Assembly: GCA_002269645.1 (NCBI GenBank)
Contig: NIVC01003761.1
Coordinates: forward strand, 14,191 to 78,190
Direction: 5' to 3'
Source: Macrostomum lignano
Taxonomy: Eukaryota
Length of the DNA: 64,000 bases
The translations under genes were made by a program, and so were the position numbers. The notes below the pieces were generated by a model. That model saw nothing but the letters and a program-made list of their open reading frames with translations, searched no databases and had not been told where the DNA came from. Below are positions 39,978 to 42,091 of the stretch, in pieces. Positions within the stretch are counted from its first letter, which is position 1; every line of letters starts with the position of its first letter.

Positions 39978-42091
39978 CTAAGCTACAAAGCGGCGCACAT
40001 ATTCCTTGATGATGGAGTCCACATCAACATTGTCAGGCAAGCCAAGGCTAACCGCCATGGAGTGATCGACAGCCGGCACAACGTTCATCGACTTGAAGCT
40101 GAAAGGCGATTCGGCCAGACTCGACTGGGTGATGGCGCCCAGCTTGATGTCCAATTCGGCTGCGACTCGTTGCGTTGCCGCCCAGATCTGGCGCAGAGTC
40201 AGAGACCTGGAAGGAATAGCGTGAAGACTTCGTAGAGTCAGGGACAGACAGACAGACAGACAGACAGACAGACAGACAGACAGACAGACAGACAGACAGA
40301 CAGACAGACAGACACAACAGAGAGACAGACAAACAGACAGACAGACACTAAGACAGACAGACAGACAGAGAGACACTAAGACAGACAGACAGACAGACAG
40401 ACACTAAGACAGACAGACAGACAGACAGACACTAAGACAGACAGACAGACAGACACTAAGACAGACAGACAGACAGACAGACACTAAGACAGACAGACAC
40501 ACAGACAGACAGACAGACAGACAGACAGACAGACAGACAGACAGACAGACAGACAGACAGACAGACAGACAGACAGACAGACAGACAGACAGACAGACAG
40601 ACAGACAGACAGACAGACAGACAGACAGACAGACAGAAAGACAGACAGACAGACAGACAGACAGACAGACAGACAGACAGACAGACAGACAGACAGACAG
40701 ACAGACAGACAGACAGACAGACAGACAGACAGACACTAAGACAGACAGACAGACAGACACTAAGACAGACAGACAGACAGACAGACAGAAAGAAACGATG
40801 ACGTGGACTTTTGCGTGGGAGTCAGACACATTACTCCCAACAGACAGAGACGCTAAGACACAAACCAATTGAAAACAAGGAAAAAGACCTGGCAGGCAGT
40901 TGTACAACCCGATTGTGCCCCAGCTGCTCGGCAGTCACTTTGCCAGCCAGTTTAATCAGACATCGGCAGTTGTTATCAATGCAGGAGCAGGGGTACGGAT
41001 AGTCCATGTCCGGGTAGACAGTGTAATCCCGGCCCAGCAGAGTCTGCGTGAAGATCATGCTGTAGGACGAGGAGACGCTGTTGCTGAACCCCGGCCGGCC
41101 AATCACGGCCGAGATTCGAGCTACTCGACCGTCGATGAAGCCGTGTCGGCTGTAGTCGCATACCAGCAGCTCGACGCACGCCTTGTGCACTCCGTAGGAC
41201 GTCGGGGACAGTCGGAAGGCCTCCTCGTTGATTGGCACTCGTCTGTTGGTGTCGTTGAAACAGGCGACGTAGTCGGTGCTGACGTACACGTAGATTTGAG
41301 GCCGGCCGAGCTTGACACCGAGAGCGCGAACCTGCTCAATCACAGTGATTGCGCCGAACAGATTTACCTGGATAAAAAGTTCAGGATTTCTTTGTTATTT
41401 GAATCTGGATTTAGCTGATTGAACGTTGCTCTATGGGTGGCAAGTTGTCATGAAGTGCGCTCTATATATGGAATGGTGGCTCAGTAAGCGGTAACCTCGA
41501 AGAGCGTCGGACTCACGACTGAAAGGTCGGGGGTTCGATTGTCGACCAACTCGAAAAAATTTGTGTCCTTAAGCAAGACACTTAACTCTGCATTGCTTCA
41601 GTTTACCCAGCTGTAAAATAGTTGGCGGCATTAGCTTAACTAACTTGAGTGTGACGACCTTCCCATCCCCAGTCCTTCAGATGCGCAGCGCAATAATCAT
41701 TACTATCATTATTATGTAGTACGACGCAACGTCAATAAACTGTTGAGCCCACCTGCATTCCGCCGTCGAAATTAGCTTCAGCCTGTCCGCTAAGCATGGC
41801 GGCCAGGTGAAAGCTGACCACAGATCGGCAGTCGGTCGCGCGTGGCCTCAGAGCCTCGGCAGTGTCTTCAGCTTTTGTGAGACTGCCGAGCACCAAGCAG
41901 CAGCGACTGTCCTCGTCGCACTGACGTCGCATGAAGGCATCGGACGAGTCGGCAACGTCGAACAGCACGATGCTCGACACAGGAAGTTTCTCGTTGGCCG
42001 ACACGCGCAAATTTCTGCGTCTACGAAGCGTTTCGACGAGACGTCGACCCAGGAAGCCGTTGGCTCCGATTACGACAGCTTGAACGCTCAT
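39978..42091 (-). CDS. denD: NAD-dependent extended SDR, D-erythronate dehydrogenase (DenD)-like, 3 exons, 348 aa
   Basis: Exons 42091-41753, 41367-40889, 40206-39978 (CAG|GTGGGC..TCCAG|GTAAAT; AG|GTCTTT..TTCCAG|G). GANGFLG Rossmann motif; [23 protein letters not shown]; [32 protein letters not shown]; C-terminal DSIIKEY. These match bacterial DenD signatures as I recall them. Confidence 0.82.
40243..40790. repeat. (GACA)n microsatellite with CACTAA interruptions (denD-like intron 2)
   Basis: Directly visible. Confidence 0.98.
41475..41715 (+). mobile_element. tRNA-derived SINE, family 1, copy 2 (denD-like intron 1), internally deleted
   Basis: AGAGCGTCGGACTCACGACTGAAAGGTCGGGGGTTCGATT..TTGTGTCCTTAAGCAAGACACTTAACTCTGCATTGCTTCAG..CCCAGCTGTAAAAT is nearly identical to copy 1. 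Confidence 0.88.

Follow-up and report, generated by a model that had tools for sequence, protein, structure and literature searches.

Does a flatworm carry a sugar-acid dehydrogenase gene that it took from bacteria? The question is raised by a three-exon gene on the minus strand of a Macrostomum lignano contig (NIVC01003761.1), at positions 39978–42091 of the window, the whole 64,000-nt stretch of DNA that was analyzed. The original prediction took it for a bacterial-type D-erythronate dehydrogenase (DenD), acquired by horizontal transfer and domesticated in the flatworm. The evidence below points to another origin. The locus is probably a functional nuclear gene for an NAD+-dependent extended short-chain dehydrogenase/reductase (SDR) that belongs to a eukaryote-restricted sister subfamily of DenD and did not come directly from bacteria. 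An old gene of a protist and choanoflagellate family would have reached the flatworm either by choanozoan descent with many losses or through an old transfer whose donor was a unicellular eukaryote.

The gene model is intact. Both introns are GT..AG, and the spliced product of 348 aa is letter-identical to NCBI PAA49915.1 (BOX15_Mlig018768g1), which confirms the reading frame, the three exons and the canonical splice sites described at first. The locus is already annotated in M. lignano, as a "hypothetical protein." The reading frame is not a chance one, because it matches a Salpingoeca rosetta protein at E = 2.7e-111. The parts of the gene are as follows.

42091..41753, minus strand: exon 1, 339 nt, codons 1–113, with the ATG at 42091; its product is the Rossmann N-terminus with GANGFLG (G9/G12/G15) and D45.
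41752..41368, minus strand: intron 1, 385 nt, phase 0, GTGGGC...TATCCAG.
41367..40889, minus strand: exon 2, 479 nt, encoding N115, S143, Y171, K175, and R187/R194/R197/R204.
40888..40207, minus strand: intron 2, 682 nt, phase 2, GTCTTT...CCTTCCAG.
40206..39978, minus strand: exon 3, 229 nt, of which 39980..39978 are the TAG stop; its product forms helices of the C-terminal substrate domain.

Relatives were searched for in a protein collection of 5.8 billion clusters. After the M. lignano copies, the top matches are all eukaryotic or lie on eukaryote-like contigs. Proteins of the choanoflagellates S. rosetta and Monosiga brevicollis are 55% identical to the M. lignano protein and that of the annelid Owenia fusiformis 49%, and many EukProt transcriptome proteins and environmental contigs of about 1 kb fall at 46–60%. 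The named cluster members include 12 choanoflagellate species from both orders, Craspedida and Acanthoecida, so that the gene is present in every choanoflagellate sampled. Further members are the testate amoebae Difflugia and Pyxidicula (Arcellinida), the rhizarians Apiculatamorpha and Norrisiella, a sequence labelled Hpha, which we take to be from the diplonemid Hemistasia phaeocysticola, and, more distantly, the euglenid Ploeotia. After these the scores fall steeply, from E = 1e-51 to 1e-31, to proteins about 32% identical, of which the named ones are D-erythronate dehydrogenases from the bacteria Pseudomonas and Janthinobacterium and from a Pseudomonadota metagenome-assembled genome. The same gap appeared in an exhaustive HMMER search of 1.84 billion representatives, where the named intermediates were Norrisiella and Ploeotia and the rest were environmental. 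Eukaryotic relatives (choanoflagellates, testate amoebae, diplonemid, cercozoans, and Owenia) are 48–56% identical to the flatworm protein, versus 30–33% for bacterial DenD.

Among named animals in the cluster collection, only M. lignano and O. fusiformis carry the gene, and a profile built from 32 clade members brought in about 115 sequences of the clade without adding a named animal. The patchy animal distribution that had been foreseen was thus found, and orthologues were not seen to be widespread in animals and to follow the species tree. Clade members with known context lie on eukaryotic DNA, namely the S. rosetta and M. brevicollis genomes, a 62-Mb Owenia chromosome, and metagenome contigs on which ELO/JmjC or profilin genes also occur. 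Many members are environmental sequences, and protist transcriptomes may contain contaminants.

Neighbor-joining trees were built from 146 sequences (323 columns, 200 bootstraps) and from 27 taxa (500 bootstraps). In both, a eukaryote-only clade that includes Macrostomum excludes all bacteria with 100% bootstrap support. The clade holds 12 choanoflagellates, Owenia, Arcellinida, Hemistasia, Apiculatamorpha, Norrisiella, and Macrostomum, and the expected nesting within bacteria fails. Peptide patterns specific to the clade found no member in the 185,579 prokaryotic (bacterial and archaeal) species genomes of GTDB, where the best match was 35% identical. Viral contigs were scanned with the clade profile for a possible giant-virus vector, and no relative was found. 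Because the clade is eukaryote-only and has no prokaryotic or viral member, direct transfer from bacteria to an animal is not supported by these comparisons.

The first reading of the locus, a bacterial DenD that moved directly into the flatworm lineage and was domesticated there, gaining introns and perhaps a new substrate, is accordingly given a very slim chance. Its best curated family and its best solved structure are indeed bacterial and the gene is very rare in animals, but the identities and the clade described above set it apart from bacterial DenD. The DenD motifs cited in its favor are present and align with the DenD family; they are not specific to bacteria, and eukaryotic relatives fit them equally well or better. 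The altered substrate pocket (STDYVAC) is a real difference that includes a 2-residue insertion, but it is common to choanoflagellates and the other members of the eukaryotic clade and is no novelty of Macrostomum. Being a subfamily-wide trait, it gives no evidence for domestication in the flatworm.

Whatever its source, the gene is long resident in the flatworm genome. It lies between a FRAS/FREM-type gene on one side (open reading frames 25867–28497 and 30279–33218) and an ADAMTS-type TSP1 gene on the other. Two further assembly contigs (228 kb and 374 kb) hold copies in the same gene order, so contamination is excluded, as the animal flanks had suggested from the start. Introns, a host repeat, animal flanks, and three syntenic copies together bear out physical integration in the host genome. 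GC content at third codon positions (GC3) follows each host genome, at 0.70 in the flatworm, 0.46 in the annelid, and 0.83 in choanoflagellates. Within the window, the GC3 of 0.70 compares with 0.52–0.60 in the neighboring FREM-like exons; this contrast was judged too small and too confounded and was set aside as evidence.

The three copies are nearly identical, none is disrupted, and they agree in intron positions and splice sites. Intron 2 measures 683 nt in one of the other copies (L008) and 225 nt in the other (L009). Copy L008 (NIVC01001862.1) has TTG in place of the TAG stop codon, which adds 2 residues and gives 350 aa. The two more diverged copy pairs differ at 9 synonymous versus 5 non-synonymous codons and at 7 versus 5, with a ratio of non-synonymous to synonymous rates (dN/dS) of about 0.19. 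The closest pair has 2 synonymous versus 4 non-synonymous differences, one of the 4 being the stop-codon change, and a dN/dS of 0.49 over shared codons. A decaying or functionless relic, or an artefactual gene model, would fit the long terminal branch and the alteration of near-fixed clade positions (e.g., ISYPYTGIF to VSSSYSMIF and NVCP to NVVP). It is nevertheless unlikely, given three intact copies with conserved splice sites, the dN/dS of the more diverged pairs, the retention of every family-invariant catalytic and binding residue, and a confident structure model.

How a functional eukaryotic gene of this family came to be in a flatworm has two main answers. In the first, the gene was present in the choanoflagellate–animal ancestor, was kept in a few spiralians (Macrostomum and Owenia), and was lost in the other animals sampled. 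We give this close to an even chance. It accords with the gene's presence in all 12 choanoflagellate species seen, across Craspedida and Acanthoecida, and with two animal carriers from different phyla that hold it on large host scaffolds with host-tracking GC3. Such descent would require about 10 or more independent losses, by our count of major animal lineages without a match, and no filasterean, ichthyosporean, or fungal match was found in the cluster collection or with the clade profile. Macrostomum with Owenia and choanoflagellates with animals were each recovered in 0% of 500 bootstraps, while Owenia grouped with testate amoebae in 73%. The branches within the clade are very short and poorly supported, so little weight attaches to the fact that the species tree is not recovered. 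Introns interrupt the gene after codon 113 and within codon 273 in Macrostomum, after codon 231 in S. rosetta and M. brevicollis, and nowhere in Owenia. The absence of a position common to the three lends descent no support and is in itself uninformative about it.

In the second answer, the Macrostomum lineage gained the gene by an old lateral transfer from a unicellular eukaryote that was its prey or associate, and Owenia gained it in a separate transfer. This is a serious possibility with somewhat less than an even chance. The gene is extremely patchy across animals and eukaryotic supergroups, and identity among Amoebozoa, choanoflagellates, and Owenia is 66–71% while two rhizarians differ widely from the remaining members (42–47% versus 56–63%). 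The Owenia protein is 67–71% identical to those of choanoflagellates and amoebae and 49% to that of Macrostomum, and its bootstrap grouping with Arcellinida fits a transfer. Its gene (L001, 8001–9035) is one uninterrupted exon in an AT-rich region, with a coding GC of 0.44 and flanks of 0.34–0.37. A second Owenia protein, 96.5% identical, is annotated elsewhere on this 62-Mb scaffold, beyond the 17-kb locus examined; the two are CAH1773730/CAH1773731 ("unnamed protein product"). No donor is identifiable for Macrostomum, since its placement is a long-branch artefact. It is closest to craspedid choanoflagellates (55–56% identity), and with three taxon sets its position was unstable and followed long branches, so no sister group is claimed. 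Host-like composition, two introns, an intronic host repeat, and three syntenic copies imply that any transfer was old, and possible contaminants in the protist transcriptomes count against this answer as well. A broader proposal is put forward only tentatively: a DenD-like gene of this subfamily may have passed one or more times from unicellular eukaryotes to animals, perhaps independently in Macrostomum and Owenia, and may have been retained by selection because its bearers can oxidize something that is of no use to other animals, either a C4 sugar acid derived from diet or ascorbate or a new substrate set by the altered pocket of the subfamily.

Among extended SDRs, the protein falls in the DenD-like branch. 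It matches Pfam Epimerase PF01370 (NAD-dependent epimerase/dehydratase, extended SDR) at 4e-12. Its top NCBIfam match is NF043036 (ErythonDh), aligned end to end (protein 5–344 to profile 3–318 of 321). An AlphaFold model built with 55 homologues has a mean predicted local distance difference test score (pLDDT) of 92.9 and a predicted template modeling score (pTM) of 0.92. PDB 2hrz is the best match both by sequence (2.1e-24) and by fold (Foldseek E 2.9e-22, template modeling [TM] score 0.77), followed in fold by GalE-like L-threonine dehydrogenases and UDP-N-acetylglucosamine 4-epimerases. The extended-SDR signature is present as a GxxGxxG NAD site and a Ser-Tyr-Lys triad. All residues at least 95% conserved across 146 family members are kept in the M. 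lignano protein, among them the GxxGxxG glycines, D45, S101, E105, N115, S143, Y171, K175, R187, R194, R197, and R204. D45 closes strand beta-2, and in SDRs an Asp at that point is usually a sign of NAD use in preference to NADP.

The eukaryotic subfamily has features of its own. Directly behind the catalytic Ser its members carry two inserted residues (STDYV[AC]CFN), and a further insertion of three residues follows a few positions on. At 13 positions, a bacterial-type consensus residue (71–97% conserved) is replaced by one to which the eukaryotic clade is 91–100% fixed, as in R to T220, P to S199, T to A200, and G to N151. Judged by its sequence, the M. lignano protein is clearly a member of this unnamed, uncharacterized eukaryotic sister subfamily of bacterial DenD.

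We infer mechanism, cofactor preference, and substrate class from the family. The enzyme would be an NAD+-dependent extended SDR of about 38 kDa (calculated from 348 aa), with NAD+ bound by the Rossmann domain through GxxGxxG and Asp45. Ser143, Tyr171, and Lys175 would oxidize a secondary hydroxyl of a small hydroxy-acid, in a reaction like that from D-erythronate to 2-oxo-tetronate. R187, R194, R197, and R204 are candidates for carboxylate binding, and this arginine cluster would hold the hydroxy-acid in place. The substrate is likely to be some C3–C6 hydroxy- or sugar acid. D-erythronate itself is a doubtful choice, and the substrate may differ from it because of the clade-specific insertion by the catalytic Ser and the 13 fixed differences. 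The protein starts at the first Rossmann strand and has no apparent targeting peptide; because it begins directly at beta-strand 1, as homologues do, it is probably cytosolic. Its C-terminus is -FVA. Three protist members (P0007, P0032, and P0051) have short C-terminal extensions whose ends resemble type 1 peroxisomal targeting signals (-AKL, -PKL, and -SKL), which suggests a peroxisomal location in those taxa.

Several points weigh against reading the locus as a functional DenD-sister dehydrogenase of eukaryotic origin. The trees are distance-based (neighbor-joining on corrected p-distances, unrooted or midpoint-rooted) and not maximum likelihood. At 0.41 substitutions per site, the branch of Macrostomum is a long one that joins whichever other long branch is present, and the gene may be under relaxed constraint. 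The NF043036 score of 158.5 bits lies below the curated equivalog cutoff of 325. The whole eukaryote-only clade scores 158–188 bits (relatives 173–188), and because all of it falls below the cutoff, DenD function is not transferable by rule. Outside the clade, scores are 233 bits for Ploeotia, 272–293 for MMETSP eukaryotes, and 450 for a Pseudomonas DenD. All clade members have Thr at T220, in place of an Arg whose conservation among the bacterial-type sequences of the family is 92%. Finally, no otnK/otnI/otnC-like partner occurs among the genes called within 10 kb, which are the ADAMTS/TSP1-like, the acidic-repeat, and the FREM-like gene. The neighborhoods of the S. rosetta and M. brevicollis genes, of two metagenomic eukaryote contigs, and of one ambiguous 27.8-kb contig, which holds small unannotated open reading frames, gave no functional clue.

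The introns carry repeats, in part as first described. Intron 2 is mostly a (GACA)n microsatellite (40243–40793), and a complementary array lies beyond the stop codon.

39816..39961: (TGTC)n microsatellite, 17 nt past the stop codon on its 3′ side, complementary to the intron-2 (GACA)n.

Exon 3 is thus flanked by complementary arrays, and in the pre-mRNA (UGUC)n could pair with (GACA)n and loop exon 3 out. Intron 1 carries a dispersed repeat with a blastn core at 41501–41636; blastn found two more copies in the window, at 8751–8886 and 47930–48064, that are 85–90% identical. A 66-nt pattern allowing up to 3 mismatches matched the intron-1 copy alone, and blastn was needed for the other two. 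The repeat contains a tRNA-like T-arm (GGTTCGATTC). ARAGORN called no tRNA in the whole window and Rfam none at 39500–42600, so the repeat cannot formally be called a short interspersed nuclear element; the microsatellite and the dispersed repeat of the original prediction stand, and the identity it gave the latter is plausible but not proven.

Among the neighboring genes, the two large exons of the FREM-like gene gave Frem_N and five Cadherin_3 repeats in a Pfam scan. One further gene lies between the ADAMTS-type and DenD-like genes, about 2 kb upstream of the latter and on the same strand.

44040–45413, minus strand: single-exon acidic gene, 457 aa, rich in E/D/T/N repeats, without a Pfam match.

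UniRef A0A1I8IR85 (809 aa) is a chimera of this acidic-repeat gene, the dehydrogenase, and a piece at 37033–37212. As these are three separate pieces, it was discarded as evidence of a fusion or a read-through transcript. Long, highly homogeneous minisatellites with periods of 10–31 bp are unusually abundant across the window, and one of them is perfect (15 bp × 40.6).

3519–5008, 14768–15887, 34217–35453, 36399–37007, 37284–38313, and others: minisatellites.

A 34-bp tandem array at 49648–55283 has about 162 copies with 90% matches and a GC skew of about +0.66, a strong strand asymmetry. It falls inside the span of the ADAMTS/TSP1-like gene model.

If the locus is an old eukaryotic gene, the attractive picture of an animal that domesticated a catabolic gene from bacteria falls away. 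What remains is a well-populated, uncharacterized eukaryotic sister subfamily of DenD with a pocket signature of its own. Its presence in only two animals offers a clean test case of extreme differential loss versus protist-to-animal transfer, and M. lignano is a tractable model for its function. The case also shows that an argument from a bacterial family model as best hit fails if protist sequences are ignored. The extreme rarity in animals, set against presence in every sampled choanoflagellate, and the substrate of the subfamily stay mildly interesting.

No paper was found that mentions the three Mlig gene ids or that links erythronate dehydrogenase with choanoflagellates. Neither Macrostomum nor Owenia is named in the main text of a 2026 compendium of metazoan horizontal gene transfer. 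Two papers cite Zhang et al., 2016, PNAS, for the pathway DenD/LtnD-OtnI-OtnK-OtnC, by which four-carbon acid sugars are broken down. According to them, in bacteria DenD (NF043036, KEGG K22025) converts D-erythronate to 2-oxo-tetronate, the first step of a route to dihydroxyacetone phosphate via OtnI, OtnK, and OtnC (PMC10580937, PMC12994016). The flatworm protein resembles bacterial DenD in its extended-SDR fold, end-to-end alignment with the family model, GxxGxxG, Asp at the end of beta-2, Ser/Tyr/Lys triad, conserved arginine cluster, and the motifs HLAA..S..AE..F..G..VNL and YG..K...ELL..DY.R.GF.DGR. It differs in identity, in its subthreshold NF043036 score, in the insertions past the catalytic Ser (STDY.. 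and ..YNK..), and in the 13 clade-discriminating residues that include the Arg to Thr220 change; its gene is eukaryotic and split by introns, and its vicinity showed no acid-sugar operon.

Two side observations concern the bacterial-type half of the family. Fusions of 450–720 aa occur there (P0149, P0154, P0177; P0167, P0182, P0184). In one type, which includes an example from an MMETSP eukaryote, the DenD-like domain is linked to a beta-hydroxyacid dehydrogenase (LtnD-like NAD_binding_2/11), so that a single polypeptide holds the two dehydrogenases through which the C4 acid-sugar pathway is entered. In the other type the DenD-like domain is linked to a classical adh_short SDR. A Pseudomonas-type metagenome contig (L010, 5187–13243), used as a control, carries the 450-bit DenD with a major facilitator superfamily transporter, an LtnD-like dehydrogenase, an ILVD/EDD-family dehydratase, and two FAA hydrolases. 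No DUF1537 kinase was found there within 7 kb, so DenDs that pass the cutoff are not always in the canonical cluster; the locus may serve a different, non-phosphorylative acid-sugar route.

The best-matching structure, 2hrz of Agrobacterium tumefaciens, is a structural-genomics entry named "nucleoside-diphosphate-sugar epimerase" and is 24% identical over the structural alignment; the deposit name gives no function beyond "epimerase." GalE-like threonine dehydrogenases (TDH), including mouse mitochondrial TDH (4yr9), are similar in fold (TM 0.74–0.78) and use the same catalytic architecture on a small hydroxy-acid. The flatworm protein lies outside their family. Natural TDHs match it at E = 3.7e-5 to 1e-3 with 22–26 bits over partial alignments, and mouse TDH scores 23 bits (E = 3.7e-4), so the distinction from the animal enzyme drawn at the outset is upheld.

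A precedent for the DenD family in animals comes from ditrysian Lepidoptera, whose denD-like genes are reported as bacterial horizontal transfers that group with bacteria (PMC12477841). No lepidopteran sequence is among the approximately 115 eukaryotic clade members listed, and the Lepidoptera case is an independent event of a different kind. The nearest comparison lies within the eukaryotic clade, with the uncharacterized S. rosetta and M. brevicollis proteins named "nucleoside-diphosphate-sugar epimerase" (55–56%) and with Owenia (49%). The Macrostomum protein is the most divergent core member and its gene has other intron positions. It is nonetheless of the same subfamily and the same length as these proteins, and it shares with choanoflagellates and Owenia the motifs STDYV[AC]CFN, EESFRLSP (EEAFRLSP in Macrostomum), and GRPG[WF]SNS (GRPGFSNS in Macrostomum).

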